Of a DNA stretch of 64,000 nt, positions 6,679 through 64,000 are shown one piece after another; position 1 is the stretch's first letter, and each line of letters begins with the position of its first letter. The stretch comes from Pavona decussata (taxonomy: Eukaryota), in the NCBI GenBank assembly GCA_977016875.1, contig CDRNST010000047.1:1240001-1304000 (forward strand). Direction: 5' to 3'. Made by a program: the position numbers and the translations under genes. The notes under the pieces were generated by a model that made no database searches, was not told the origin of the DNA, and saw nothing but the letters and a program-made list of their open reading frames with translations.

Positions 6679-6823
6679 NNNNNNNNNNNNNNNNNNNNNN
6701 NNNNNNNNNNNNNNNNNNNNNNNNNNNNNNNNNNNNNNNNNNNNNNNNNNNNNNNNNNNNNNNNNNNNNNNNNNNNNNNNNNNNNNNNNNNNNNNNNNNN
6801 NNNNNNNNNNNNNNNNNNNNNNN
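6679..6823. other. Assembly gap (145 N) in repeat-like sequence
   Basis: Run of N. The left flank has TTAAGGTGGCTC twice (~6528 and ~6617), resembling a transposon end. Confidence 0.95.
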
Positions 6824-15106: not shown

Positions 15107-15442
<336 letters not shown>

Positions 15443-16744
15443 TAACAACTTCAGCCAGAAATTCGCTGCCACACTGTGTCCCTATCTGCGCGAAGAAATC
15501 GCGTTTTATTGTCGCTAAGCTTACAAGAGACATGCCATGTTTGTTTGCATTAAAACAAGCGCCACTTAAGTCTTGCATTTTGAATACGGAATGAAAAAAG
15601 GCGAGCAGACTGCCTGTACTCGACGCGTAAATTATTTACCACACCACAGAATACCCTGGAACAAATTCAAACTAATGGTACCGCCTAGATTGAACCCTTA
15701 GTAATGGTTTGCGCTCGATTTCTAAGACTCCAAAATGTTCCGATCGCGGGGTGAAAATAGCAAATTAGGATTAGAATCACTTTAAGGACTCGAATATCGT
15801 CAAGATGTTTGCTTTTTTAATGCATTTCTTCAAGCTGTATTTCCGTGCAATTACATTGTTTACCGCAGGATTCGCCAAACCGTTTCAAAAGCACCTGGCA
15901 GTCAACAAACCTGCCCACCCTCGCTTCTTCGCCCATTTAATTTTGAAGAGTGAAGGCTGTAGTAAAAGAAGTTAACATCTCGTGCTTAGATTTCTCGTCT
16001 TTTAAGCCTTTTTTGTCCCGTTAAGTCTTCTGTACCACCTAGATGATAGAACTGGAAGGCTTTCGGTGTTAACACCTTTGCAAATACCTGAATACCAACT
16101 GTACCTGTATTGTTGCGATTAGTAAAGACAGGTGAATTTTAGTCTCGAATCGACATGAAAATCGAGAAAGGATTGAGTTAAATATACGGTTCTTTAGGCG
16201 ACGGCGAGAATACATCGATACAGAAATTTCCTGGAACATCCGGTGGTTTCGAAATTGCAATGGCTGTATACTTTTCTTTGACAACGTCTTCTCTTTGTGA
16301 AAGAAGCCTAATTACAAACTGAAACGTGTGAAAAAAACTTGTTCGGGCTTATTTCACTTTTCACACTTCACTTGGAAGGATAAAAGCATGAGCTTAACTG
16401 GGCTTTCTTACAACGGCAGTTTGTCGACATTTTCGTCTGGTTTCATGATTTTCGTTTAATGTCTAGCACTTATTTGTGTATCAAGTCGCGAGAGCGCCCT
16501 GCCGGTTTTCAGCGCAAAGAGAAGCCCGACTTTTAAGTAGACTATTAAATAAATGTCAAACTTTTGTGTTTGTATCTCATTTTATTAATGTTGAGATTCA
16601 CAAAACACGACTGCAATTTATCATGTCATTATATTAAATTGCGCATCACCTTTCCAGAGCTAATATGCCTGTACATTAATGTACGCGTAAAGAAAAGAAA
16701 CAAACAAATATTCAATAGCGTTGACAAATATATATTCCCTTTAG

Positions 16745-17293
16745 GTGTGGTTCAAAAATCGCCGGGCGAAATGGCGAAAGAAGGAGAAGAACAACCCAAC
16801 CAACATACTTGGACAAGACAAGGGAGGAACAATTATTCCAAGCGTGAATGGATTTTACGAAAGCCCAAGCTCCATTCGCTATGAAAGCTCCGAGACACCG
16901 CCGTCGGTTTATCCCAACTACAGCACAAACTACTGGAGTAAAGGAGCTCCCAGCCTAGGCTACAGCTCACTACAGCAAGGAAGTAACAGTCTTGGGTATA
17001 ACTCGTTCAGCCAAATACCTCCACCGTGCCCTGTGCCACCGCAAATATCAGGAACTCTGAGTCCCTTTTCAACCCCAATCTCGAGCGATAACAGCTCGGT
17101 ATCATACCCGGCCAGTTCTTCCAGCGTTCCGAGTGTTCCTTGCGGTTATCCGCCAACTTATGGCTACCAAGAACAGAGCTCGGTGTATTTAAAAGGTAAA
17201 AGTTCTTCCATGAGTCACCATCCGAACTATTCGCAGCCGAATCCGTACAGCTCATATCCATACGGGATGGCCGAAATCCCAATTAATATTTAG
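16745..17293 (+). CDS. Pitx: Pitx coding exon 3 (helix 3 VWFKNRRAKWRKKE, K50, plus S/P/Y-rich C-terminus)
   Basis: ccctttag|GTG TGG TTC AAA AAT; open to TAG at 17291-17293. Confidence 0.95.
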   Translation: MWFKNRRAKWRKKEKNNPTNILGQDKGGTIIPSVNGFYESPSSIRYESSETPPSVYPNYSTNYWSKGAPSLGYSSLQQGSNSLGYNSFSQIPPPCPVPPQISGTLSPFSTPISSDNSSVSYPASSSSVPSVPCGYPPTYGYQEQSSVYLKGKSSSMSHHPNYSQPNPYSSYPYGMAEIPINI

Positions 17294-37970: not shown

Positions 37971-38085
37971 ATGGATCGCCATCCATTCTCTATTGAAAAC
38001 ATCCTGAAAGACACACGCGGTGCGGGTAGCATCCTGAAAATAGCACCGACTTCCGAGGCACTAGCATTGGCTGAGAGAATGGCAG
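37971..38085 (+). CDS. Dmbx: Dmbx-A exon 1 (MDRHPFSIENILK...TSEALALAERMA; eh1 plus Dmbx motif)
   Basis: GCCATGG start, FSIENIL eh1 motif, donor GCAG|GTAAGA. Not in the ORF track (<60 aa). Confidence 0.85.
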
Positions 38086-41000
38086 GTAAGATTGCATTGC
38101 CTTTCAGTTGTAATGCCACTAACACGGTGAACCTGTATTAAGAAACTTCGAGACTCCTGTTAATTACATTCTCCTTACGACGAAGCAGGGAACCGCCTTT
38201 GTTTTAAGACGTTAACTAGGAATCCGTTTAACTCTCATCACTGTCAACATAATTATACCAAAAAATGTTCCTCTTCAGAAACCGACGATTCTATTGTCTG
38301 ACAACAGTCAATAGGGTCTCTAATCAACAGTACCGAGAATAAAAACTCTTCTTGTATGCCAAGACGTTTGTGAATGTTCAAATAAAGTTTTAGTAATTCG
38401 TTTCCAACTGAAACAAAGCAGCCGGAACTATTCTTCAATTAAAGCAGAATGGAGTTCCACCTTGAAAGAAAAACGACGTAAGGCACTCCATTCCTCAGTT
38501 TAAGGAAAGTAAAATTCGGTTAGTGATTTAATTCAACTGAGGGAGGGTCATTTTCAACGTTTCTTTAAGTCGTTGGCCATGACTGCTGTAAAATCAAAGA
38601 AACAGGCGCGTACCGTGGTCGTAAACTGAGAAATTTGCTGGTTAAAAAATATAGTTATCCGTGGGGAAAAATTTTGCAGCAAAGGAATCCTTTGCATTGT
38701 GCCAAAAATTTGATTTGGATTCCGTGACGAATGAAGTAAAATAGGAAACTTTGTTAGTAAGCTCATAATCCATGTGGTTGTATCAGTAATTCAACCAAAT
38801 CTCTTGCGGCTACGATATGAGTTTACATTGGAGGGTTTCGTAATTACAGCCTCTATAAGATCGATCAAACAGTAAAGTAAAATCTGGTACGCTTTCTTAT
38901 CTGCATCTCAGCATGTCCGTAAACGTTAAATTTAAAATCTAAGCCTTCTACTTTATTGACTAGAAAACAAAAATCGCGTTCGTGATCACGCCTTTTCAAA
39001 TCTAATTTCCGCAATCATTTATACATAAGTCGGTTTAAAACCCCGTGTTCTCCATGGAAAGAATTCCTTTGTTTTGAAACCCACCCGGTGAAGCGGTGCG
39101 GATCCAATGAAGAGAGGAAAGAGAAACAAACTGTGTACCCCTGACAAAGGATACTTCCGTTAGTTCATAAACATTTGAGCGGAAATGCTCATTGTATGAG
39201 CGGTATCCTGAAACAAGACTTAATCTTCTAAGTCTTACCGCACGTAGCCAACCATACGTTGGTGTGAACGACTACTTGGTTAATCGACGTACACGACGCA
39301 ATAAAGTATGTTGTTTCTCCCAATGGTTGCCAGCATTATGTGAGTGAAACGCCTTCCGTTTTATGATGAACCGTAATGAAGTTCCGTAGTCTAACAATTC
39401 TATGGTGTTGCAGTCCCTCATTTGTTCCTGATTAAAAAGACAATAGACCTATAAACTTTCTAATTCTAATTTTGTATCCGACTAATACTTTCTTTTTGAA
39501 ACTTTGAAGTTGCGTAAAGAACGTGAAAGGTCTCCCACGTACTTTAAAAATAATCATAAGATGTTAGTACTTCTCAGTGACACTATCCGTAGTTAATTAC
39601 AGTTGTAGAGTATGCGGCAATGAACGGCTGATTTCGCAACTTAAGGTAATGATTTCTGGGTTTCTTTATTAGACAACAATCAAGCTGAGAAAGTAAAAAA
39701 GGAGGAAGCTTTCATTTCATATCTGAATGCTACTAGCCCGCCAACTGACAGGGCGTCGCCCACAGTGCCAGCAAACGAAGCGAGGCTAAAACCGCAATTT
39801 TCTTTAGCACTAATCCTTCAAAAGTCCTATTAATCACGAACTAGAATTTCTCTTTGTTCTCTGGTTACTATGCCTAATTGAAAATGTCAGTTGTGACAAT
39901 CTCATAAAGTTGCGATTCTCTATGTTTACGTTCGCTAGGTGCTTGGTGAGTCAACACAAGAACAGTTAATCAGATTTATTAGCACCCTCTGTCAGTCTCG
40001 TGGAAGCAATGATTACAATTCTAGGCATTCCCAGGTGCTGAGGTTTACACAGCGCCTAAGCTTTGATGAAATATCTTAAATTAGTTGTGTTCTTTGTGAA
40101 GGAGGTTACTCTCTTTATTTTGATCTCATACATTGTCTGACAGCTTACCAGTGTGTTGGCAAATAGGACAAAGTGCAATTTCTTAATTGCATTGGCGTAT
40201 AGTCTCATCTGGAAGAGAAACACCCTTAACGCTAAGAGGTTATTCTTTGTTAATCAGTATTAACTGGTATGAAAAACTCACATTAAGTGTTTCAATCAAC
40301 GGTTATGGTACAATGAAGGGCGTTAACGTGTAGTTGTCTAGTTTCCCTTCACGTTTTCCTGTGACTTGAATGCAGCAAATTTCCGTTACCATTCTTTCTC
40401 GTTCAGTTTTCAAAAGAAAACTACCTTTGACCTTGAGTCTCTAACCCAAAACTTTGTTGTTGGTTTCATGGGGGTATGGAGAAAAATACCTGACGCTTTT
40501 GCATTAGCTCTTGATTATTATGAATCAGTCACTGATTTTCTAGCGGTGAAGTTTCTTAGAGAACGCCGGAAATTACACCCAAACAGTAACAAAAGGGAAG
40601 GGATGATGAATAATAGCTGTCACATCACAAGCCATCCGACTTCGAACAGAAGACCGAAAGAAAAATTGTATAAACAAGTGAGTAGAATTCATCTCTCTGG
40701 AACAATGCTAAGCATAAAGCTCAGCTTGGCTTAATGAGGTTCAGTTGTACAAAGCAACCAAAAAGTAACACATGCAACGGGTACCGAACTGTTGCGTCAG
40801 TGTATAGTTTTCGTTCTCTAAATCAATATAGAACTGATTTATTGTTCCGTGTGCTCTGTGTGTGAAAAATGTGCTGACATAAATTGCCTTCACAAGTTTT
40901 CGTTTCAAAGACGTGTTATCAAAAATAGCCTACGAGAGTCTCAGAAGTCCATTAGACAGGAGGCGTCTAGTGGGGAATCAGACGTTAGATCTCACCGCGA

Positions 41001-41997
41001 TGGATGGACTACGACGACCTAGCAGCGTGTTTTCGTCCAAGGACAACCAAGAGAGAAATGAAAGACGCAAGAGCAAACAGCATCTAATTTTTCTTTACAA
41101 TACCAATACTTGAACAGCCACACAGGACACGAGAATAATGAGAATTATCAAAGATATAAAGGACAGCGAGGAAAAGCGGCATGTTAATGATGATTTTGAG
41201 TATTATAGCCTTGAGCGAGCACTTGAATGCTTCGCTTGTCACTATACCAGAGCAAACAGGGACGTTGCAAAGCAATACATCTTATTTATTAATTACAAAG
41301 TTTGCAATTGCTCTGTCAAAAGATAGGGACCAGGTACAGCTCGAATACTTGTTAGAGAAATTTGCGACGTGGTCTGTATGTTTGAATAGAGCTGTATGGC
41401 GCTGTCGGAAGTGGTAGTCGTACGTTTAGCCCTTTGTTGTCGTTTCGTGATGCTCAGTGTCACATCAGCTCATTTATCTTCAGTCGCCTTGCTTTGATAT
41501 CTCCATTTCTCAGGCCGTACAAGTGCGTTTTAACCATTTATATAGGGGTCAACCGGGGGTCTTTAAGCGTATTCCCCAGGATGCTCGATGCCAAATTGTC
41601 TCATTCATTTCCACTTTTTTCAGTCGGTAAAAGTAAATTTTAACCACACTCACCTATTGTGAGTTTTCAAGGTAGTTTCCTACGGGTATCATCGACATAT
41701 TAATACAGGGGTCAGTTGGGGGACTTTTACCATATTCCCTGGAGGTATTTTTGATCTATTCCCAGGGTACTTTTTTTCACTATTCTCGCTGTCAATCCAA
41801 TTCCAAGATTATATTTGAGTGAGTTTGGTCAGTCTTTCTTCTGAGCATTCGAGAAAAATTCAATGAACAGACTGGAGACAGTGCCATTGAAGGCTCATGT
41901 CTGATGGTTTTTTTCACTCTCTCTCTCTTGTTTTTAAAATGCAAACATTCCGTGCTCACGTGTCCTCCTGTCTTACGCTGCCATCTTTTATCTGCAG

Positions 41998-42173
41998 ACA
42001 TCATCCTGAAGGTCAGCTGCATGGAGGGAAGGAAGATTCGACGAACAAGAACCACATTCAACCAGTTTCAGTTGGAGACACTTGAGAGAACATTTGCTAG
42101 GACGCATTACCCTGATCTGATGCTACGCGAGCAGCTGGCTGCCTACACCAGTTTGCCTGAATCACGAATCCAG
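41998..42173 (+). CDS. Dmbx: Dmbx-A exon 2 ([59 protein letters not shown])
   Basis: tctgcag| acceptor, CAG|GTCAGT donor; PRD homeodomain with THYPD. Confidence 0.92.
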
Positions 42174-44205
42174 GTCAGTTTGCCATAGAGAAACCGTCCG
42201 CTATAAGCCCCTTAAGCTAAACGTCAGAAAATCTGGGGGAAAAAATTTGGCAGTGAATCACGTCTTTTACCATAAAATATAATACAAACTGGTCGTGAAA
42301 GGTTAATTCTTTCGCAAACAATCTAAGTGAATAATGTGTTGCATTCAGTTTGTTCTACTTGTAAAACGTCTGCTTCCACAACCAATTACCACTGAAAATC
42401 GGGTGCATGTCGTTTTAAGTGGAAAGTCCTGGGCTGCATGAAAAAGTCAAATGCTTAGTATGCGTCCATCTTGTAATTGTTGGAGAGTTCGATGAGGAGC
42501 CTCCCAAGGCCGAGTTCCTCTCTCCACCTCCACCAAGAAAAAAAAAAGAAAAGTGAAAAAAGAAAAGTTCGAAAAGAGTATTATAATGATGGTAATTTGG
42601 AGTTATTAAGAATTTACGCATGTGGAGCTTTTGTAGTGCTATCAGCATTGCTTCACAAAAAAGACCCAACGTAGAAACGTAACTGTAGTTTTGGCTTGTC
42701 GTATATTGTCTAATAAATTATGTCAGAATGGCTTGAGTGTTGCGTCTCATTTCAATCTTTGTCGCGCAGTCATGGATCAACTTAAAATATTTTCAGGTAA
42801 CCACCTTTTTTTTTAAACAGCAATTCAATTATTTCATATAGGACTCCATGAAGGAAAAAGTTTAAATGGTACTAAAGTAATGAAAGTTGATCCATTTTAG
42901 GAAAGATCTCTCAAGGAACAACTTGCAACTGAATTCAGAGAACAGCGATATTCCGTTTGAATAATGTGAATAACGAGAACGTTATTCACATTTCGACAAT
43001 TAAGTGAAGGCTCTTGAATCAAAATTATTTAGGGTACAAATACATTTCGACAATAAATTAAAAATTCTTGTTTTAGTTTAACCATGTTCATAAAAAGCAA
43101 GTATTTGTTAACTGTTTTGACGGGATTTGAGCAAATGCTATTTTTAGGGTCTTTGTGGGAGATACCGGCCAGAGTTCAGGTGTTTTGGTCCAAAAATAGC
43201 TTCATATCGCTTAAGTCGTTTTATTAGCGTCTAAGCGATAACAAAGGGATTTAAAGGATTAACATAATTAAGGAAAATTTACGAACGCACCGAATAATGG
43301 ATATTAGTTTCTTCAACTTGAGGTAAAGAGCAACAGCCTATGAAGAATAAAATCAACATGGTTATCTTAAAAAAGATTACGATCACAATGGCAGTCTATC
43401 AATTGCGTATTGTCTCCCAGGGTAGTATAGAATTGCATTGAGAATGATTAATTTTCAAGTTAAATTAAATATACGAGTTGAAGCTGAAGGAGCGTAGACC
43501 AATTTGAAGGTGTGAACATCCTTAGCAACTCTGTTTACAGTAGCTGTAGCACTGCAAGTGGGCTTAAATGACAAGTTTGTTAATATGTTCAGTCTCCCCA
43601 ATTTTTTTTTCCGTGGGCAACGGAGTACACATTGTCTCTCCCTAAGCTTCTGAGGTGATCAGGCCCAAAAGAATCTGTTTCCAGACCAGATTGCAATGCT
43701 AAAATCCCACCCACAAAAAAACATGTTTAGAAATATCAATTTCTCTCAATGCACAATTGAGGAAATAGTAACTGGACAGGAAATATTGGCTAGTTTAAAA
43801 ATTTTGCCCGCTAAATTTAGACATGATATATACCTCTTTTTAAAAATTTTATATATATCACAGTGCACGTTTGAAAATTATATTGGTTGCGAAATCCTAC
43901 ATAATTAGTAAAGGTTGATTAGTGATATTCATTCGACCAAGCGAGTCACAATAAATCGGTTTAATTCTCCGACGATCTTAAAAATAAAAAGGTCTGGAAT
44001 TTTGGTAATGAGAATATAGGAAATGATCACGACAGAAGCTCAAGACCTGTCATAGACGGAAATGTTGTAATAGGAAGAAAACTCTCCCAACTTCAAAGAA
44101 AGGGATAATTGCTCTCAACCATGGGCGTTTTCAAATGCGTGTAGGTCGCGAAGGTTGAAGCATATTTTATGCTAATTTACTTCCAAAATTGTGCACAATT
44201 TTCAG

Positions 44206-44607
44206 GTTTGGTTCAAGAATCGTCGCGCCAAGTACCGCAAACTGAAAGGATCCCAAGAAACTGAAGGCCGAGAGGCCGAGGAAAGGCACACGGAGACAAA
44301 GAGGACCGAAAGCAATGATGATGAAGCTGATCCAGCAAAAGCAGCAGCGGACGAGGATCCATCCCATCCACCGACAAAAAGACAAAGAACGGAAAGTGAT
44401 TCGGAAGAGCGTATAACAATTCCTGCACCCTTCGCACCACTGAGCTCTGCGTACATTCCGCGGTCATTCCCGTTTGACCCGCGGCTATCTTCAGGTTATG
44501 GTGCCCCATATGTGCCTGACTGGGCGGTGTATTACGACGGTTTAAATTACCGCCCTTGTCCAATGACCATCCAGCAAATGCATTCAAGCATTGGAGTCAT
44601 TCACTGA
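44206..44607 (+). CDS. Dmbx: Dmbx-A exon 3 (VWFKNRRAKYRK, K50, plus acidic and P/Y-rich tail)
   Basis: ttttcag|GTT TGG TTC AAG AAT; open to TGA at 44605-44607. Confidence 0.92.
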   Translation, partial: VWFKNRRAKYRKLKGSQETEGREAEERHTETKRTESNDDEADPAKAAADEDPSHPPTKRQRTESDSEERITIPAPFAPLSSAYIPRSFPFDPRLSSGYGAPYVPDWAVYYDGLNYRPCPMTIQQMHSSIGVIH

Positions 44608-48706: not shown

Positions 48707-48955
48707 CTAATTCCGCAAGCGTCTTGCGTGCACTGGTTCTGTCGGCAAGTATTTGGGAATGAAAACAATTTAATCTTGCAAACAGGAGTAAATGCCTTAA
48801 AATAAACTGACTAAATGGCTGCTGATGGATGGTTGTCTGTAACAAGACCGCACAATAAATCGTCCCTTCCTTAAATATGTGCTGCTTCGAAGGATTTGTC
48901 TCTTTTTTTTTAATACCTTAATCCTGTCGTTCTCAAAACTAACTCTTGACAAGTG
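48707..48955 (+). promoter_or_regulatory. Conserved upstream module of Dmbx-B (copy 1 of 3)
   Basis: GAAAACAATTTA(48761)...TGACTAA...GCTGAT...CAATAAATC(48853)...TAATACCTTAATCC(48911-48924)...TTGACAA, in the same order as the copies at 51884 and 59071. Confidence 0.7.
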
Positions 48956-49580: not shown

Positions 49581-49710
49581 ATGGAGGCCAACCCGTTTTC
49601 TATTGAAAGCATCCTGAAGAATAGCTCTTCTTCAAATGTCGATGAGGAGAAAGAAAGTACTCCACCATCGAAATCCACTGAGGCGCTGTCACTAGCTGTG
49701 AAACTTGCTG
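49581..49710 (+). CDS. Dmbx: Dmbx-B exon 1 (MEANPFSIESILK...STEALSLAVKLA)
   Basis: eh1 motif FSIESIL, donor GCTG|GTAAGT; homologous to the exons at 37971 and 59870. Not in the ORF track. Confidence 0.85.
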
Positions 49711-51883: not shown

Positions 51884-52490
51884 AAATTCCAGGACTGGCT
51901 TCTTTCGATACGTTTTTCAAAATGAAAACAATTTATTCTTGCACGCGCGTGTAAATACCTTGAATTAAAATGACTAACTGTCGGCTGACAGATGAATGGC
52001 TTGCAATAAATCATAATTTCACGGAGGCGCGATGATGGAGGGAATTCCGGGAACTAATGCTTTAATCCTCCGACACTAGAAAAGCTTAGGAGAGATGTTA
52101 AGGCTAAAGCTTGATCCTTGACAAATCTCAGGGAAATGTTATCAAAAAGATTTAAACCCTTGATGGTTCTGATAATGAACTCAAAATATGTAGGAACCTT
52201 ATACACCAGAGCCGTGGATGTTGGCACAAAGGTTAGGTGTCTAACTGCTCGATACGCATTATCACAATCGCTGGCAGGATGGATGCTCGTCTTCCTTAAT
52301 GCATATTTCTAAAACCAAAAATGACAATGGTAAAAAACTCTTCGTGCTTTCCTACTTTGCCTTCCGAGAGGCATACAGTTGAGTGGTTAGGTAAAGGCAT
52401 TACATTAGATCAGGGATTTTGCGGTCGCGATTCTTGAGATTTTATAGAACGACTTTCATTATTTAGGCGGATATTTGTCAATGTCAGCTA
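51884..52490 (+). promoter_or_regulatory. Intronic relic copy of the Dmbx upstream/promoter region (copy 2 of 3)
   Basis: GAAAACAATTTA(51924), CAATAAATCATAA(52004), TAATGCTTTAATCC(52055-52068), TTGACAA, GTTAGGTGTCTAACTGCT(52232) and ATTTGTCAATGTCA(52473) are colinear with 59071-59718. Confidence 0.7.
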
Positions 52491-52818: not shown

Positions 52819-52872
<54 letters not shown>

Positions 52873-52873
<1 letters not shown>

Positions 52874-53874
52874 TTCGTGATGCCGTGAGGCTTCGATATG
52901 ATTGGCCGATACCCGATAATCCGTCAATATGCGTTTGTGGGAGCATGTTTACAGTAGACCACGCGATGATCTGCCAGCGTGGAGGCTTAGTTATTCAGCG
53001 CTACAATGAAATACGCGATCTACAGGCCAAGTTGCTTGACATGGTTTGCTATGATATGCAAGTTGAACCGGCTTTACAACCTATTACAGGCGAAGAGCTT
53101 GCCAGAGGGACTAACCAAGCCCCTGACGCACGCCTTGGCGTCCACTGTAGGGGTTTCTGGGAGAGACAGAGAGCTGCATTTTTCAAAATAAGGGTGTGTC
53201 ATCCCAATGCGGACTCGTATAGAGATCTTAGCCCCAAGCAAATTTACAGGATTCATGAAAATGAAAAGAAGCGAAAATACAACTCTCGCGTCACAGAAAT
53301 AGAGCAAGGCACATTCACCCCACTGCACTGGTGTTTACAACGACGGGAGGGATGGCTGACGAATGCCTGAGATACCACTCAAGATTAGCCGATCTATTAT
53401 CTGCAAAAAAGCAAGAGAGTTACGCCACAACAATTTCATGGGTCAGGGCGAAAGTGCCCTTTGCATTTTTGCGGAACGCGCTCCTATGCCTAAGGCCTAA
53501 GGATCGAGAACCCCGAGAAGGAGGAACTTAGACGTTAAGGACAGGGATCTAGAAATAAAGAAGGGCCAAGCAAGACTTCGCTAGACTGCTATAGATACTT
53601 TATTATGGGTTGATTTATAGAGGCTTCTGAATTTTTCTCATTTTAGTGTATGATTGGTCACATGAATGACTTTTGTTCTTTTTTTAAATTTAATATTATT
53701 GTTTTTTTTAATATTGTGCTTGAAAATAGCTCTGTTGTGCTTCGAGATACTCTTTTTTTAATCACAATTGAATTGTAAATAGTTTTTTTACTAATCTTTT
53801 TTCTACTTTTAACTTGTGGATATCGATTTTCCTTGGAATATTTTAATAAAGTTTTAATATTAAAATAAAAAAAA
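52873..53874 (+). mobile_element. 5'-truncated non-LTR retrotransposon with restriction-like endonuclease (CRE-like), inserted in (ATT)n
   Basis: ORFs 52885-53370 and 53331-53531 (frameshift): CVCG.....DHAMIC zinc knuckle, [41 protein letters not shown]. 3' AATAAA and A-rich tail; (ATT)n on both sides (52819-52871 and 53892-54046). Confidence 0.85.
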
Positions 53875-53989
53875 TGATTATAATTACTATAATTATTATT
53901 ATTATTATTATTATTATCACTCAGGTTTTAATAGAATCAAACTGTATCTAGTAGATTTTATTGTTGTAAATAATAGAGTTATCATTCCA

Positions 53990-54048
<59 letters not shown>

Positions 54049-54518
54049 GACAATGCCCGGCCCAGTTGCTTTAACTGAATGCTAAAATGTACAGTGGTTA
54101 CTGCAATGATGCATGGAGAAACCATAAAAATGACCTTTTCCTTTCAATTATTTTTTCGGAATAGACCAAAAATTAAACGTCAGCTGATTATGTCAACAAA
54201 CGCTGAAAAAATTAAACTAAAAGTTCCCGAATGGGTGATTATTAACGAGGTTCCAAGATGAACAAAATTATTATAGTTACACGTCGCTTTAGTAAAAGGC
54301 TCTTTTTATAACGGTCTCATCCCCTTAACTTTCCCATTTTACACCAAGGAATTATTGCTTCCACTATTGGTACGATGTTATTTGAGATGAATATGAACGA
54401 AAAAAGTATCGTAAAAGAAAATAGAATTTTTCCGACAGGGAGATTGAGAAAGCATTCGCTCCATCAAAAGACATACATAAGTTACGCAGAAGTTTATCAA
54501 ACTTTGATTCTCTTTTAG

Positions 54519-54697
54519 ATGTTATCCTGGAAGCTCGACAAGAGAAAAATCGCCGTCCCCCAAGGCGCACGCGCACAGCCTTCACGCACCAACAACTGGG
54601 AATACTGGAAAAATCCTTCAGCAAAACGCATTACCCGGATGTAGAGCTTAGAGAGCAGCTTGCTGCAAAGACCAACCTACAAGAAGGCAGAATTCAG
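54519..54697 (+). CDS. Dmbx: Dmbx-B exon 2 ([60 protein letters not shown])
   Basis: tcttttag| acceptor, CAG|GTAAAG donor; Dmbx DxILEAR motif and homeodomain. Confidence 0.92.
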
Positions 54698-54906
54698 GTA
54701 AAGAGAACATCCTAGTGCACACTTGTACCTACACTCACCCGGTTACGTTTATTATAAGAACAACTTCTGTATACGTTCACGTCTCGGCCCCTGAACAGTC
54801 CATAACGAACCATTGTATCTGTGAAGGACCTTCCACAATGATAAATGAAAAAACACCATTTTCTTTTTTGTCATAGTTATAACAGTTTTTACTTTGTTGG
54901 TTTTAG

Positions 54907-55245
54907 GTTTGGTTTAAAAACAGACGTGCAAAATATCGTAAGGAGGCAAAACGATATTTCTCCCCAGAGAGTTATGAAAGTGAAGATGAAGACATTTCTG
55001 TCGCCTGTCACATGACACAGACCCAAGAGCCCTCATCCTATTTTCAGTGTAATACAGCAATGCCGTACTGCTGCAACTATATTGATCCTATGGATTCAGC
55101 AAGACATATTGGATTTCCCTCAGACATATACACACAGTTTTCTGCATATGCACCATTGGCACATGCCAATGGGTATCGCACATTCTCATATGCTAATAAT
55201 CGGATTATGGATCATGCGCATTTGGGGAATATATGGGGCCGGTAA
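54907..55245 (+). CDS. Dmbx: Dmbx-B exon 3 (VWFKNRRAKYRKE... to GR*)
   Basis: ttttag|GTT TGG TTT AAA AAC, in frame with track ORF 55012-55245. Confidence 0.9.
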   Translation, partial: VWFKNRRAKYRKEAKRYFSPESYESEDEDISVACHMTQTQEPSSYFQCNTAMPYCCNYIDPMDSARHIGFPSDIYTQFSAYAPLAHANGYRTFSYANNRIMDHAHLGNIWGR

Positions 55246-56379
55246 TACGGAGGGAAAGAACACTCATTAAAGTGGCTCTCCATTTTGCAGCGCGAACGAT
55301 GTGTGTTTTCGAAACAGTGGCGGATTGAAGCTCCCGAAATCGTAAGGGCCTCCGCCAGACTTCCCAGGATATCAGTACCTACTATGTGAGATTTTCTTAG
55401 GGCTCCTTAATTCACCCTTGCTTCCAATGCTTATGATATGAGACAATCGTCGGACATTATGGAACGAACCCCTAAACGGTACCAGCTAGCGTCGCAGAAC
55501 ACCCTCGCACAATGAACGAGACATTAATCTGTTAAATAACTTTCAAGAAAAAGCGAGACAAGGGAATTCGTTGAAGGGAAGGCGTGCCGGATGTTATAAA
55601 TATATATATATTTCGATACAGTACAAGTTTCCCAACGTATCGTTTCGGAACGAGTTATGCAACCTAAGAAATTGGTCCTGCGAAGGAGGTATCGGCTGCT
55701 TTACATAGCTTTTATCTCGAGATGAATTTAGGGCATTTTTCTGCATAACTTTAAACGTTTTATCTGTTTAGAAGGTCTTACTGGCCACTGGATTTGCTAT
55801 GGTAAAAACTAAAAGGCCGCCTTAACAAAATGCAGCGGCCGCTGGAAGAATCGACACGACGGACCATTACACGTAAATTGCTAATAAAGTCTGTTATTGA
55901 ATTCATACTACTACTGAAGGCTCTCACATCTTTGACTCGTTCTGCCGAGTAAAAGATGGGACTCGTTTTGACTCGTGTTATGTTGTGCTCTATAGCCGTT
56001 TAAATTTGTAAACCAGTGGTAGACATCTTAATATCGGAGAAATAAATTTTAAGAAAAGTACAAACAGGAGATAGGGCTTGACTTATATTCACTGTGTTAG
56101 CATTCTCAGTTCTTTCCGGGACATTCACCAATGTCGAGTAGAATGATACTGATTGTCTTTTCACCCGGAAATTGCATATAACTTTTTCATACATGAGAAC
56201 TGCTAAAATAAAGCCCTGCACTTGAAAAGAGCAAATACAAACAGCAAATCGCTCCCACAGTGATTGTAATCCATTCTCTGTTAGTAGCATTCTGAAGAAG
56301 AAGTCTTTCCCACTTAACGAGGACACTGGAGAATCGTAAATCTCCCATTCCAACTCCCACACTTTGTCAGTTGCCTTCT

Positions 56380-56493
56380 TAGCCTACGTGTAGCCGTACC
56401 TACCCCACCCCCATGGAAAAACAGGAGGAGGGAACGGAAGGGTTCAGTGCTCACGCTTTTCCTCGGAGGATGGGTACAGCTACACGTAGGCTA
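56380..56493. mobile_element. Small TA-flanked MITE
   Basis: TAGCCTACGTGTAGCCGTACC ... GGTACAGCTACACGTAGGCTA terminal inverted repeats. Confidence 0.75.
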
Positions 56494-59070
56494 ACTTGTA
56501 CCTTTACCTTCTTAGACTCCCTTTTTACCATTCTTTTATAATTGAATCTCACTGAACAACCTTTCCGGTTAATACCATGAATCACTATAATTCATAGTCT
56601 CATTTGTTAAGTGTCTCATAAAGAACTTCTCTTGTAAGCAACTGCCTTTCCTATTCCTGAGAGTGGTCTTTCACTGACGAATTAGTGATTCACTTGAAAT
56701 TTGCATAAACGATAGAATATTACACTCCTGCTGGCATGTTACCTCCTAAAAACCATTGGAAGACATAGTTCGCCCAAAGCCTAAACCATCTTGATCAAGG
56801 CAATCTTCAAACAGAGAAACACAATACCTGAAAATTATACCATTTGCATTTTGACTGAGATTTAACACATATTTGGAAGATCGACTTTGGGATTTACACA
56901 AAGGATACACTGTAAAGAGTGTAGTGTCCTGGGAACTGTCAATGCCCAAGGCAGACAGATCAGTAGAAGGCGTTTTCTTGATCAGCAGCTACAGCCCTAG
57001 CCGCCGGGCACAAGCTACCAACAAAATCACGAGTTACCAATAAGAGACCCAAGATGGTTCTTTGCTGAGAATGGTGTCAGCCACTGTTAGGGGAACGTTT
57101 ACTTAATACAAGCAACAGAACAAGAAAGGCGAAAAGGAGTGAAGAGGTTTATTTGGATAACATTGAGTAGTCAGTGCGGATAAAAAAACACTATCGAGCG
57201 AGTTAGACCAAACTAGTAGCTCAATTGGCTAATTGGATTAAATAAAAGGATCTTGTGCCTTGTATTACACTCCACGCTACTGTGGTCTAATCAGATTACT
57301 TATCACCTAAATTCTTTCCTGTTTTAAATTCACGGCGCGGGCACCGGAAACCGATAAAGAACCCAAGTTCTACCAAACCGGGCAGCTTCATCATAGCCTT
57401 TTTTGGTGAATTATTAGAGCACGCTCAAGTTCAAAAACCAACATTTCCATTTCCAACAAGCTCAAAATTAAACACTTCCAAATTCCAGTTCTATCTGGAT
57501 TATTGTCAAGCACTTCATCATGAACCTCTTGCTCAGGAGATTGTGCAAGCACTCCCCATGTTATTCACATTAAAAAAACAAAAAAACAAAACACTTTACT
57601 TTACTTTAGCACAGAGAATCAGATTGCTTCCAGTAGGTGAGAGATATTCAGTTTCATTTTTAACAGTTTTGTAGTTCAGGTATTTCTTGCTGAGAATTAA
57701 TTAATGGAAGGAGAACGTCATCTTCTTGTCACATGTAGACCTTGTCGCCAAATACTGCATGGTACGTGACGTTGCTTTTGTATCTAGAATAAAGTATATA
57801 CTATGTGTAGACATATTTTTATAACGAACAATTATAGTGTTACCAGGTTGTTTTGGAACAGAGCCCTGTGTCTAATTGGGATGTGATAAGTTTGTCAAGG
57901 ATAAAGGAGAAAGTTTTAGGGAGAAAAGATATCTACAGAAAAAATTGTAAGGATTAGGGATAATTAACTTAATTTTAGGGTAACTCTAACCCTAATCTTA
58001 AGGATAGCAGACTTTCAATTTTAGGAGTTAGGAGTAACTATGCTAAAAATTACCCCCTTGGACACACTAATTTATGTCAGGCAGCACCTTCTGGAACTTC
58101 ACCCTTCAATAAATGGCTCTGTATATATATGTCTCAAAACAGTCCTGGTTTCTAGTTTTAAACGCCGAAGTGTCATCTATGACCTATGGTTCCCTTGCTA
58201 TTTATACTTTCACTGTGTGTGTGATTTAACCCATTCACAAATTGCAGTCTGCAAAGATGTGATGTGTGAAATCCTGAATGGGTAAAACTTCCTGCAATAG
58301 GGGTAAATGGACATGTAATATGCGGAACGTCAGTTAATTAATCATTCACAATGAATGAATTGAAAATTGATACACAAAATCAAACTGTTTTTACAGATCT
58401 TGTGATTAACTCAGTGTATTCACATACATGACTTTTAGTTAAAATACGTATGATATAGTAATATGATCAAGCACTATCATTCCAAACATTGGAAGGAAAA
58501 TATTTTTAGACTGGACGGCCCAAATGGGTCACCCGAAAGCAGTTCTCAGTTGTGATCAAGGCTTCTTCCTACTTGTATGTTCCGTATGTAGTGAAAATCT
58601 GGTTTTCCCCAAAGGCTTTGTGTCTTGAACAAATTGCAATCTATTTTCTCCCATTCCAGGTTTGAAAGATTTATTAGACAACTCGTTAAAATGTGATCGG
58701 AAAGCAACGACAACCGAGTCATAACATGAACTAGTGACCGTACCACGCAAAAGCACTGTTTAAGTCATTCACTTCTTTTTAAGTATTCTAACTATGTTGT
58801 AAGAAAATAAGATTCGAGGGAAACCGTCAATAAATATTATTGTAATATAACCTTAACATAGGCAATACCGACGTGCCCATTGTTACAAGGGCAATTAAAA
58901 GACGTATTTCGTTCATAGGTGGTTACAGCGAAGATCAAATGAACACTGTTTGTAATCTGTTACTTGGAGCTTATAACGGATGAACCGGTCAGTGTAAAAT
59001 TGTAACTGAAACCCTGGATTATTTCTTCATTTATCAACTGATGCGCGATAAACATCGGCGAGTAATGAAG

Positions 59071-59330
59071 AAAATTCCAAGACTATCTCACACTCGCCGC
59101 CTCTGTCGGTACGCATTTGAAAACGAAAACAATTTACTCCTGTAAACAGGAGGGAAAAAACTGACTAAAATTGACTAAATAGCTGCTGATAGATAGCGGG
59201 TGGGAGACACCTAGACCAATAAATCATAACTTCACAGGGTATCGCAAATGGGGATTTTCTTGAATTAATACCTTAATCCCGTGTCACGAAAAAAAGTTAA
59301 CAGCCTTCACATTTGCCTCTCTTGACAAAC
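59071..59330 (+). promoter_or_regulatory. Conserved upstream module of Dmbx-C (copy 3 of 3)
   Basis: GAAAACAATTTA(59125), TGACTAAAT.GCTGCTGAT, CAATAAATCATAA(59217), TAATACCTTAATCC(59266-59279), CTTGACAA. Confidence 0.7.
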
Positions 59331-59869
59331 ACCAGCTGATCTTTTATGTTTTAATTGAAACCTCGGCTCTTGCGATATCGAAGTTGAAACATCTTGTGCA
59401 CAACGTAACTTTACCACGAGATAAGTCCTCCTCGACGTATTGTAAACGTTAAGGTGTCTAATTGCTAATTTGGTTAATAGCATTAGCACATCACTCTTAA
59501 AATAAGTATAGGTGAAAGAACTCGGAAACGATTTGATTCATTGCAGTTTCTGGAGAATATACCCAGAGGAGGAGTCACCATGATTCCAATTCTTTAGGGC
59601 ACAAGCGGTGACTGATTGCATGGTTTAAAAGCACAGAGCGTCAGATGTTGGCATCTCAGTGTGACAGGGTCTTGGGGCATTTATCAATGTCACGTCTGCA
59701 GCTTAATTGCATTTACAGGACAGCTTGAAAGAAAACACGGTTATATTTGAAAACCGCACATGTAGTCGTCTCATATTTAGACACCGCAGTCGTGCAAAAA
59801 TGCCCAACTGATGATTGAAAGAAGTAAATTTCATTAAAAGGGCTCAGCAGTTATAGAAGGACGCCATTG

Positions 59870-60002
59870 ATGGATACGAATCCATTTTCAATTGAAAGCA
59901 TTCTGAAAAAGAATACTCCTTCGCCCTCGCTCGAAGACAACACAGAGGAAACGCAACCATCGACATCAACTGAAGCACTGAGTCTGGCGGTGAAACTAGC
60001 TG
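59870..60002 (+). CDS. Dmbx: Dmbx-C exon 1 (MDTNPFSIESILKK...STEALSLAVKLA)
   Basis: eh1 plus Dmbx motif; donor GCTG|GTAAGT, phase 1. Confidence 0.88.
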
Positions 60003-61471
60003 GTAAGTCTGTCAGTTATGTTAAACAAGGAATATCTCCAATAAACCACTCAGATTAAGTGTGTAACAGTGCAATAGTTTCTTGGCAGTGTGAAATGACC
60101 ACGTCTTAAACCATTTCAAAGTGTTTAAACATGTTTAATAGAAAAAGGCACTGCTGTTCAGAGAAAATCTAACATCACAATCTAACGAATAAGCTACAAC
60201 TTAGCATCTCTGCTGGGGAAGCAGCATGGCTTTGTCAAAGATCGATAATCTAAGTCTAAACAGATTTTGTTTTTCTATAACAAAGTACTTTATTTCAATT
60301 CGAGTGTCTAAATTGTTTTAAAATCAGTGGAACAGTTTCCCCGATGAACTTTCGATAGTTCTGGGCCCTAGAAAGATAACTGAGAGATTTAATTATTTAA
60401 TTTGTTCGTAATCTTTGTCAAAACCATTTTAACCGTAACTTAGATCCTCCACTGATTTGGGATGGACTGAATAACTACAATGAAGCTCACGGTTTTCGCG
60501 TTAATCCTGTTATCTTCCTGTCCCTTGGGGAAAAAGAAACGGACATTGCAAATTATTATAAACTTCCAACGAGCTAAAATATGAAGTTGCGATGTCAATT
60601 GCAAAAGACAGATGTGGTATAACTCTTAGGCTCACTTTGTAATTGTAAGTAAAGACGTTTATATGGACTACACCTGGAGATGTTATAAACTGCATGAATG
60701 CAATGGCTATGACTGCATTTTAAAAAGGTATCTGTAGTTGATTATTGTTTGGATTAAAAACGATGAAACCTTATCGATCAATTCAACCAAGTGGTACTTC
60801 TTGATTAAATGCGGAGAGTTTATGTAAACAAGTTAACAAGGAGAGGATGGGTTAATGTACAATTCAGAAGATAAACTATCTAAAACAGTTTAGTACATTA
60901 TATGTCTCTTTCTGTTGGAGCCTCTCAAACTTAAAAACAGCAAATCCTAAATAAACTGAGGATAGGGGTTTTCTAAGGAATGTCTTTAGAGATTGTAGCT
61001 CGAATGTCTATCATCTGGTGTATGGATACAACCCCAAGGGAAATTCCATTCTAAGTACTCTAGGCTGTATAGTATTGAAGGCATTAAAAAACGTAGCCTG
61101 AACGCCATGCACTTGGTAAAAAGTGACTAAAAAGATAGTAGTAAGCAGACGTTGGCTCCTTTTTAATTTAACGCATAACACATGCCGCACGCTTATGTTT
61201 ATCTGGCAGCTTATCAGAATTAGATACATTTCCCTGAACAATCTGGCGCCAGCAAAGTCTGGAAAATGATGATAAAGAAGGAAACGATTTCAAGAGCTTT
61301 AACTTATCTCTACTGCCAGTCCCTCTAAGTAACTCCAGAGGGCAAACGTTCACAGTTTTCCAACTCACGTTCTCAACTCAACGTGGTAATCAGGCACCAT
61401 AATAAGGACCCCTTACCAACTTCTGTAAACTTAGAAGGCAGCAAAAGTAATTAAATTTATGTGGGCATAAA

Positions 61472-61861
61472 GGACGGTACGTGCCTCCTAATAGAAAGGT
61501 ATTTTTTTCACAGTTTATGACTATGCGGAAAAAGCAGGTCTTAGGAAGGGATATTGAAACCCAAAATAAAATTTGGGGTAACCACGCATTTTTTAAGAGA
61601 TACTAAAGCAACACTAATTCTGAAAAGCCATAAAATTCCAAATAATGTATGGATTTTTTTCCAAATCGAGACTCAATTATCTCTGACAAATGCGTGATTG
61701 CCCCTAATTTTCAATAACCTTTGCTAAGATCTTCTTTTCCCGCACAGTTATAAACCGCGCAAAATTCCTTTGAGTTGTTAGGCACCGTCAGTGAGAAATT
61801 CTCGCCGAGCCAATCCAAGATGCGCTGAACGTATGCGCAGCAGTAAAAGGGACATCAGTCC
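61472..61861. mobile_element. Kolobok-like MITE, diverged copy 2 of 26742-27134
   Basis: Shares GGACGGT..., GGGGTAACCACGCATTTTT, AATGTATGG, AATTATCTCTGA.AAATGC.TG, AGATGCGC.GAACGTATGCGCAGCA. Confidence 0.75.
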
Positions 61862-63179
61862 TTGAATCTCTAAAGACTAGTGTAATTCATTGACTGAGAA
61901 GGTACAGGAAAGTTCCAACAGCGTTTAGTTTAAAATCATTGAACTTTAAACTTTCAAACACAAAAGCTATTGTGGTCTCTGTGCGTTAAACGGTTACAGT
62001 ACAGGAAACTGGGATTATATCAACGGCTGTTAATATTTATTCAAGCTTACTCTTTTAAATCTAGTTTCAAACTTTAGGTAATCCTCCTGGTAATGTTCAG
62101 ATACAGACGTTTAAGGGACAATTATTCACGATGCAAACCTATCATCGACAGCGACGAAAATCAAAGATAAAGTCAGTTCCCCGTCATAAGGACTCTCGAG
62201 GTGTTTTAGAAAATCAATAAAAATATTACCTTGACGAACTAAAGCGACTGAATCACGAAACAAATTTTTATTTCAAAATGAGAGCGAGAGGTTGTAACAT
62301 CCTCAGATAATTGCTCAGTACTGCTCTCTCGACTATTAACTAGGTTGATTAGTGAAATTACTCTACAAGAATTACATTATGTCAAGAACAGTCACTGTGG
62401 AAGACATTGTTCAATCCAGTAAAACAGGTGGAGGCCGCCGCCTTTTCTGTGCGCCCTGCTTTTGAGGATTCGCCGCAGGCGAGGTTATTTTGTACGTACA
62501 AGGGAAGCTCTTGGGACTGAACAAGACCGTACAAATAGTTTGATGTATTCGTGGCGATGATATCGAATGAATATTGTTGGAGACCAATTTTGATCTTGGT
62601 GCTGTTTCGTGGAATCTGCATCAGCTGATAAAACTGCATTTTTTTATATCCAAGTTTCCTAAGCATGTCACGCAAAAGCCACGCCTTTCTTTGAAGAACA
62701 CTTCAGAAAGACTAAAACTAGTACTGTGTTCACACTTGCACCAAATAGTTTACTCTGGTTTTGCTATAATTTGTGTTCATACTGAGGAGTCCTGGACGCT
62801 AAAACAGGTTCGCAACGAGGTTCTTTGACTATGATCGTGTGCTCTAGTGTAAACCATATGAGATCGGTTGAGTGTGGACTTTGATGCATGCAACCAGTCG
62901 GTGAAATGATCAATGGTGCGTCGAGGAAAGAATGAGTCAACTTTTTATGCTTTCAAGGGTGCCCTTCCTTTCTATCAATAATGGTAATGATAATAACAAT
63001 AATAGTAATGATACTCATGATGATGATGATAACACTAATAATGACAATGATAGTCTCTCAACAACTGGGCAGCAAAGATATTTCCTTGACTTAAATACAG
63101 CTTAAATTAGTTGCACTGGTTCTAAATGATTAGATGGCTACAACAACAAAATCAACAACAACAGTTAAACTACTACTAC

Positions 63180-63385
63180 TTTATATAAGTGTCACTGTTT
63201 TTAACTCTACAGTACCAATTTGGGCCGATACTGTAATTGATTAAAGGAAACACTACAAGCTCAAAGCAATTCTGTAAAAATCCCAACTGACAGGAGGGCT
63301 CACCAGATGACTATTTACATTTAGCATAGCGGAGGATTTGAACAAGGGACTACCTCGCGGTCTTGAACCCGAGAACTGCAAATCT
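63180..63385 (-). mobile_element. Degenerate SINE fragment
   Basis: AATCCCAACTG.CAGGAGG...CCAG.TG.CTATTTACA...GAGGATTTGAAC..GGGACTACC...CTTGAACCCG, which is B-box-like on the minus strand. Confidence 0.5.
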
Positions 63386-63710
63386 ACTACTGCAAATCTG
63401 TATAACACCTATATATGTTTCGGATTAACTTGTGATGGAAGTGAGGTATACGAAAGTAATTTATATGATTTGATTTGATTAACTTGTGCAGTCATTATGG
63501 CATTAACTCAATAAAGGAAATTATATGTCCTTTTTTTCCATGTCATGAAACGAGAAACCATGTTCAATTTTTTTCCAGAGAAAACCATACAAGGTTCTGA
63601 TTTCAATATAAAGATTGAAAAACTGCGCAGCGTAGTTAATTAATGAGAATTTAAAGATTATAAAATCGACGCTGTTAATTTAACGAACTTTTCTTACGGT
63701 ACAGTTTCGT

Positions 63711-63744
63711 ACCCTGAAGAAGGCAGCATTGCCGAAACGTCGGT
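63711..63744 (+). ncRNA. Minimal type-I hammerhead-ribozyme-like motif (Penelope type)
   Basis: ACC-CUGAAGA-A-GGCA(GCAU)UGCC-GAAAC-GUC-GGU: intact core, 4-bp stem II, 3-bp stem I. Confidence 0.5.
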
Positions 63745-63843
63745 TTTGATTGCGTCGAGTTTTAATTAGCGATTGTTGTTTTATCCTCTTGTGATTAGCT
63801 AAACCTTTAAGGCACCTTTACTAATACATACCTACATTTTCAG

Positions 63844-64000
63844 ATGTTATCCTGGAAGCTCGGCAAGAGAAAAATCGCCGTCCCCCAAGGCGCACGCGCA
63901 CAGCCTTCACGCACCAACAGCTAGGAATACTGGAAAAATCCTTCAGCAAAACGCATTACCCGGATGTGGAGCTTAGAGAGCAGATTGCTGCAAAGACCAA
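63844..64000 (+). CDS. Dmbx: Dmbx-C exon 2 (homeodomain), truncated by the window end
   Basis: cattttcag|AT GTT ATC CTG GAA GCT; encodes [52 protein letters not shown]. Confidence 0.92.

Follow-up and report, generated by a model that had tools for sequence, protein, structure and literature searches.

Why should two neighbouring homeobox genes be nearly identical over one exon and deeply diverged on either side of it? The question is raised by two tandem genes, here called B and C, in a 64,000-nt stretch of the genome of the coral Pavona decussata (G000:C47:1240001-1304000; hereafter, the window), which is part of a 602-Mb assembly in which B and C reside on a contig of 2.28 Mb. The first-pass annotation of the window, made from the sequence itself, had ascribed the resemblance to recent gene conversion confined to the homeobox exon. 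That proposal is supported by exon-wise trees, by approximately unbiased (AU) topology tests and by the synonymous divergence (dS) of orthologues, and we consider it very probable that the similarity of the second exons of B and C stems from recurrent interlocus gene conversion, limited by homology, between old tandem paralogues.

Gene structures were located with a six-frame motif scan and tblastn, protein searches being done exon by exon, and gene C was completed with the genomic sequence that adjoins the 3' end of the window (L009). By the motif scan and tblastn, the homeobox genes of the window, all on the forward strand, are one Pitx-like gene and three three-exon genes, named A, B and C. 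In gene B, exon 1 (49581-49710) begins with the ATG start, carries the eh1-like motif NPFSIESIL and ends at a phase-1 donor (G|gtaagt); exon 2 (54519-54697), the homogenised tract, specifies 13 pre-homeodomain residues and homeodomain residues 1-46; and exon 3 (54907-55245) specifies helix 3 (VWFKNRRAKYRK, with the lysine at homeodomain position 50, K50), a divergent C-terminus and the stop codon. The end of exon 2 has been corrected to 54697 relative to the first-pass annotation, because the next intron is in phase 0. That intron (54698-54906, 209 nt) does not align to the 767-nt second intron of gene C. Gene C has its first exon at 59870-60002 and its second at 63844-64022 (acceptor cag|AT, donor CAG|gtgagt); the last 22 nt of the latter (L009:1-22) extend past the window end, where exon 3 is also located (L009:790-1134). 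B and C have the same orientation and are 9.3 kb apart.

The comparison from which the annotation started (54519-54675 against 63844-64000, 5 of 157 nt different, four of the changes synonymous and one Leu/Ile) was exactly reproduced. The five differences (A/G, A/G, G/A, A/G and C/A) are found at offsets 20, 77, 80, 125 and 141, and the complete second exons still differ at 5 of 179 nt, with the same four synonymous changes and one Leu/Ile. The identity spans the AG acceptor and the GT donor, to break at positions -3 and +3: at its widest the homogenised tract measures 183 nt (54517-54699), and at its minimum it covers exon positions 6-171. When the B region was compared with the C region by blastn, exon 2 matched at 96.8% over 187 nt, exon 1 and exon 3 each at 71%, and a short promoter-proximal block at 78%; no match was returned in the introns flanking exon 2 on either side, in keeping with the earlier statement that the intron before exon 2 cannot be aligned.

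The homogenisation of exon 2 reaches the synonymous sites. Per-exon dS, a check that the annotation had proposed, was calculated with the Nei–Gojobori method (NG86) and with exon 3 of gene C included: it is 0.10 in exon 2, while exon 1 gives 1.06 and exon 3 gives 1.02. Amongst the degenerate codons that specify the same amino acid in B and C, 4 of 58 differ in exon 2, as against 14 of 28 in exon 1 and 19 of 50 in exon 3 (4/58 versus 33/78 for exons 1 and 3 pooled; Fisher p = 2e-6). The two first exons share 70.5% nucleotide identity, and the count of 12 synonymously different codons out of 22 in their conserved blocks, including TCA versus AGT, proved correct; the proteins specified by the third exons are 48% identical. 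This exon 2 sequence is present at only two loci genome-wide, those of B and C, and in pairwise comparisons of the eight Dmbx-like exon 2 copies in the contig and one other exon of the paired (PRD) class, B-C is the only pair outside the range of 52-74% nucleotide identity.

Whether the homeobox portion of exon 3 had been converted as well was considered separately, and the idea was rejected. There, B and C specify the same protein, yet four synonymous differences occur in 39 nt, no fewer than between species, and there is no excess similarity.

To find relatives, we used a word search with the 59-residue exon 2, which returned open reading frame (ORF) fragments (the exon with its intron flanks) from other assemblies; their contigs were then fetched. 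With P. decussata as sp1, the other corals are sp2 (L012; genes A, B and C), sp3 (L014/L018; genes B and C), sp5 (L022; genes B and C) and sp6 (L030/L031; genes A and B), complemented by C-only or partial contigs (L015/16, L017 and the Tara metagenome scaffolds L019-21). The A-B-C synteny is shared by sp2, sp3 and sp5, and A-B by sp6. In every species, exon 1 (ME-A... versus MD/N-T...) and exon 3 are clearly separable into B-type and C-type sequences, and each of these types is common to the syntenic genes of three to four other corals.

Exon-wise trees, likewise suggested in the first-pass annotation, group exon 2 by species and exons 1 and 3 by paralogue. For exon 2, the two sp1 genes form a clade with support values of 99/99 (100/98 after addition of sp6), and by the AU test neither the B genes (p = 2e-5 and 1.6e-5) nor the C genes (p = 4.6e-5) are monophyletic. 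For exon 3, 100% of bootstrap trees place B and C on the opposite sides of one branch, B clusters with its B orthologues, and the AU test rejects a clade of B and C of sp1 (p = 1.7e-6; 4e-75 with sp6 added). The same contrast emerges from quartet counts, a model-free tally of the informative sites that group sequences by species versus those that group them by paralogue. Set against sp2, sp3 and sp5, exon 2 of sp1 yields 15:0, 9:0 and 18:0, and exon 3 yields 7:20, 6:36 and 6:21; for exon 1, the counts with sp2 and sp3 are 0:13 and 4:10. The second exons of B and C in sp1 differ from each other at 5 nt, and from any orthologue at 17-36 nt. The grouping of exons 1 and 3 by paralogue implies that the B/C duplication predates the split of these corals. 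Only exon 2 of the two genes has a recent common ancestor within the sp1 lineage; it is a discrete homogenised segment, with a history unlike that of its flanks.

The timing of the last event can be gauged with a near relative of P. decussata, represented by contigs L013 and L029. L029 aligns to an intron and exon 3 of gene A at 91.0% identity over 2.2 kb, from which the neutral divergence between sp1 and the near relative is approximately 9%. In L013 (Logan SRR28602244, 1634 nt), an exon 2 that differs by 4-5 nt from B and from C is joined to a B-type upstream intron (90% identity) and a C-type downstream intron (some 90%, apart from indels). Two readings of this contig are available: a chimera made by the assembler where the exon is shared, or a genuine B/C fusion allele that arose by unequal crossing-over. 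Both imply that B and C share exon 2 in the near relative too. A search for the near relative's gene C with exon 3 of C gave three distant matches only. The second exons of B, C and L013 have 2-3 private changes each, about the number expected from 4-5% neutral divergence per branch on some 42 synonymous sites. On the strength of these very few sites, the last homogenisation would date to about the time when the near relative split off.

Further tracts are suggested in more distant corals. In sp2 and sp5, all 11 sites that are consistently paralogue-specific are located at the ends of exon 2 (positions 6-45 and 165-171) and none at positions 46-164; B and C differ there at 7-8 of 119 nt in the centre of the exon versus 14 of 58 at its ends (p = 9e-4). 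This pattern indicates an older and shorter conversion tract, approximately over exon positions 46-164, that would date to the common ancestor of sp2 and sp5. In sp3, no sign of exon 2 conversion was found. Taken together, the sp1 tract, the older sp2/sp5 tract and the unconverted sp3 exons point to conversion that is recurrent yet sporadic, with a tract extent that varies.

These observations can be assembled into a mechanism. B and C are ancient tandem paralogues and belong to an extensive cluster of Dmbx-like homeobox genes of the K50 paired class in a scleractinian coral. In the sp1 lineage, interlocus (non-allelic) gene conversion would have transferred the first homeobox exon of one gene to the other, and the remainder of both genes (exons 1 and 3, introns and promoters) retained its old divergence. 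The heteroduplex would be unable to pass from the conserved homeobox into introns without remaining homology, and we infer that the tract ends within 3 nt of both splice sites because the flanking introns are devoid of it. The homeobox would thus be the sole site for strand invasion and, after homogenisation, would make a better substrate for more events. At the molecular level, we infer that two direct repeats separated by 9.3 kb underwent ordinary interlocus conversion of their DNA.

Several points weigh against this explanation. Before conversion, the identity of the two exons was maybe only some 80-88%, with perfect runs of 17-41 nt (the range measured between unconverted or older B/C pairs), which is low for efficient conversion. 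Both tract ends match the exon borders more tightly than a random conversion tract would, and the limit set by homology is a putative explanation. The rise in GC content at third codon positions (GC3) expected of GC-biased conversion is not seen, the converted exon having values of 0.49-0.53 and the others 0.37-0.53. At the sites that are paralogue-specific in sp2 and sp5, sp1 mixes B-type and C-type states, which singles out neither gene as the donor. Finally, exon 2 of B and that of C in this individual are known from the assembly alone.

Tract ends that lie no more than 3 nt from both splice sites are also what repair templated by RNA or cDNA would leave behind, as a spliced transcript of the paralogue would serve as a template with exon-exact ends. 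We nevertheless deem this course of events very unlikely. The start of exon 3 is adjacent to exon 2 in a cDNA and is homologous between the two genes (35 of 39 nt shared), but it does not exhibit excess similarity; the older tract in sp2 and sp5 ends inside the exon, like ordinary DNA conversion tracts; and the unalignable introns already account for the limits of the tract.

An error of assembly or polishing, by which one exon was overwritten with reads of the other copy or the region was mis-assembled, is highly improbable. Short reads that are fully inside the conserved exon can indeed cross-map. However, five differences persist between the copies, whose surrounding introns on the 2.28-Mb contig are unique and unalignable; cross-mapping requires a prior high identity, and polishing cannot reduce some 20-40 differences to five. 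Moreover, contig L013 of the near relative, from a different sequencing run, has the same exon with B-type and C-type introns, and an analogous, weaker pattern occurs in two independent assemblies, those of sp2 and sp5.

Constraint on the nucleotide sequence, without any conversion, would have purifying selection preserve exon 2 for splicing enhancers, RNA structure or an antisense function. The coincidence of the tract limits with the exon limits is what constraint on the mature RNA would give, but the orthologous exons are far from constrained: they differ at 17-41 of 177 nt, with 31-47% of same-amino-acid codons different and dS between 0.76 and 1.7, while in sp3 the second exons of B and C differ at 38 nt (dS 1.69). 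The low dS between orthologues that the first-pass annotation had named as the mark of such constraint is thus absent; given these orthologue values, the synonymous sites of exon 2 are free to change, and we attach next to no credence to this alternative. Equally hard to credit is a recent B/C duplication in the sp1 lineage followed by very fast change of exons 1 and 3 and the introns around a preserved homeobox exon: the tandem, same-strand layout would suit it, and tandem Dmbx duplications are known in corals, at least as a later text relates them (PMC6214176, citing Hislop et al. 2005), but the exon 1 and exon 3 types shared with syntenic genes of other corals, the bootstrap split and the AU test on exon 3 speak against it, and, dS being a neutral measure, fast protein evolution does not account for its value of about 1 in exons 1 and 3.

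With interlocus conversion as the preferred explanation, the consequences for the proteins can be considered. In exons 1 and 3, dN/dS (the ratio of nonsynonymous to synonymous divergence) between B and C is approximately 0.2-0.3, which, together with the intact splice sites, suggests that both are functional genes. The first-pass annotation had held that conversion of exon 2 keeps the DNA-binding specificity of the two proteins the same. This is partly off the mark: the recognition helix with K50 is encoded in the unconverted exon 3, where its identity between B and C is upheld by ordinary purifying selection. Three replacements common to B and C occur in sp1 only: Asn and Pro immediately preceding the homeodomain, and Ala within helix 2. 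The residues of the other corals at these positions are Thr or Ala, Thr/Ile/Ala and Glu, respectively. What can be demonstrated of conversion is that it passed these lineage-specific replacements on to both genes. It is conceivable, if rather unlikely, that the homogenisation of exon 2, instead of being a neutral by-product, was favoured or retained by way of cooperative paired-class dimers of B and C, a second variant of this speculation being the templating by spliced RNA discussed above. Should the dimer reading be true, the contact surfaces (the N-terminal arm and helices 1-2) would be encoded by exon 2, and conversion would transmit replacements jointly to both partners.

The genes owe their affiliation to similarity. 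Gene A (37971..44607, forward strand; exons 37971-38085, 41998-42173 and 44206-44607) has the same plan as B and C: the eh1-like motif NPFSIE[SN]IL opens each of the three, and a phase-1 intron is followed by the exon for homeodomain residues 1-46 and by a phase-0 intron at the paired-class position 46/47. Their final exon starts with VWFKNRRAKYRK; it includes VWFKNRRAK, i.e., lysine at homeodomain position 50. An N-terminal eh1-like motif is typical also of Gsc and Hesx. Exon 2 of gene A shares 57% nucleotide identity with those of B and C, and gene A is the older paralogue and the outgroup. The Pfam Homeodomain (PF00046) is recognised in exon 2 of B with an E-value of 3e-14, and the nearest solved structures are of the paired class (Alx4, aristaless, DUX4, Pax6, paired and OTX2). 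NCBI gives the name diencephalon/mesencephalon homeobox protein 1-B(-like) to the gene A orthologues of Montipora foliosa and Acropora cervicornis; more matches came from Porites lutea and Oculina patagonica, and exon 3 of C has a match in Stylophora pistillata. By these matches, the source is a scleractinian coral without close kinship to any of the five. Family naming with the protein atlas returned generic homeodomain clusters only. Dmbx is, for A, B and C, a similarity-based label; orthology to bilaterian Dmbx, as opposed to Otx, Gsc or Pitx, would have indirect support from the NCBI names, which are automatic, and from the six Nematostella homeodomains assigned to DMBX (Ryan et al. 2006).

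The array is larger than the window. A Pitx-like K50 homeobox gene (15161-17290, forward strand; homeobox exons 15161-15310 and 16745-17290) lies upstream of the Dmbx-like genes; its homeodomain includes RNRYPDM and, further on, VWFKNRRAKWRK, a family signature that makes it a putative Pitx gene. At the other side, the same-strand cluster extends over G000:C47:1331227-1408438 (L023-L028), 27-104 kb past the window end, with five further Dmbx-like exon 2 copies (at 1331227, 1343918, 1350614, 1358786 and 1380088) and another PRD-class homeobox exon at 1408280. Together with the Pitx-like gene, A, B and C, this amounts to at least 10 K50/PRD homeobox genes in approximately 170 kb. Homogenisation is not seen between any two of these additional copies (52-74% nucleotide identity).

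The sequences between and within these genes have features of their own. Between B and C, at 56262-56306 on the forward strand, there is a degenerate ORF resembling exon 1, with NPFSVSSILKKK and then a stop; it is probably the dead first exon of a lost or rearranged paralogue. Two segments, 48738-48830 upstream of B and 51898-52068 in intron 1 of B, resemble the sequence upstream of exon 1 of C (59099-59279) at 78% and 67%, respectively. Some 1.2 kb of intron 1 of B (52819-54044) is missing from L013, the flanks of which are 84-90% identical; this would be an insertion in sp1 or a deletion in the relative, and the edges of the segment resemble a low-complexity repeat seen also at 62977-63052. 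In intron 1 of C, a short interspersed repeat (63608-63745) occurs in dozens of genome copies, many of them arranged as neighbouring inverted halves; when 63300-64000 was scanned with Rfam, no family matched at E-values up to 0.1. Approximately 30 nt after exon 2 of C, there is a palindromic element similar to a miniature inverted-repeat transposable element (MITE) (L009:30-130), which is in the same place in the near relative (L013:1253-1324). In sp6, gene B is followed by an ORF of a retrotransposon of the long interspersed nuclear element (LINE) type (L031:18896-20138; matches to endonuclease, reverse transcriptase and PHD), which shows rapid turnover of the array's intergenic spacers. Positions 6679-6823 of the window consist of 145 consecutive N.

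Conversion between homeobox genes has been described in other animals. In Capitella teleta, a 150-bp conversion tract lies within the homeobox, on its 5' side, in Dlxa and Dlxb (McDougall et al. 2011, PMC3199776). As in the coral, these are closely linked homeobox duplicates; the pattern is interpreted as mosaic gene conversion, and related species that carry these duplicates lack it. Unlike the coral genes, they are inverted tail-to-tail, and the tract takes in some intron (PMC3199776). B and C, by contrast, are direct repeats 9.3 kb apart with a tract that stops at the splice sites, and the inference is backed here by the orthologous arrays of several species and by topology tests. TPRX1 and TPRX2, ETCHbox genes of the PRD class, are likewise tandem paralogues that have been repeatedly homogenised across mammal lineages, chiefly in the homeobox (Lewin, Royall & Holland 2021, PMC8208926); they are, however, young, fast-evolving, CRX-derived mammalian genes, whereas coral B and C are old and belong to a cnidarian Dmbx-like expansion. 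Engrailed and invected of hexapods, as they are cited in PMC3199776, are homeobox paralogues too, with conversion limited to conserved coding parts, albeit of the ANTP/NKL class.

Within the Anthozoa, Nematostella has six DMBX homeodomains (Ryan et al. 2006, PMC1779571), and tandem Dmbx genes are attributed to Acropora millepora (Hislop et al. 2005, as cited in PMC6214176). These expansions concern the gene family to which A-B-C of P. decussata belong, and they have the tandem layout in common with it; they differ in that the similarity of linked copies is taken there, as far as such secondary citation conveys it, for independent duplication, which conversion can mimic. None of the papers in the library searched ties cnidarian Dmbx to gene conversion. 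The mechanism of homeobox gene conversion is well known, and the coral Dmbx-like genes B and C are a new gene family for it; the finding refines the existing picture and does not overturn it.

Genes B and C offer a clean, well-bounded natural case of mosaic concerted evolution between developmental transcription-factor genes, and the locus is useful for studying the reach of conversion where the shared homology is only some 180 nt. Trees of homeodomains only, on which the classification of cnidarian homeobox genes usually relies, would misread B and C as a recent, species-specific duplication. The counts of "independent duplications" in the Dmbx, Nk2 and Msx clusters of corals and anemones may be inflated likewise.

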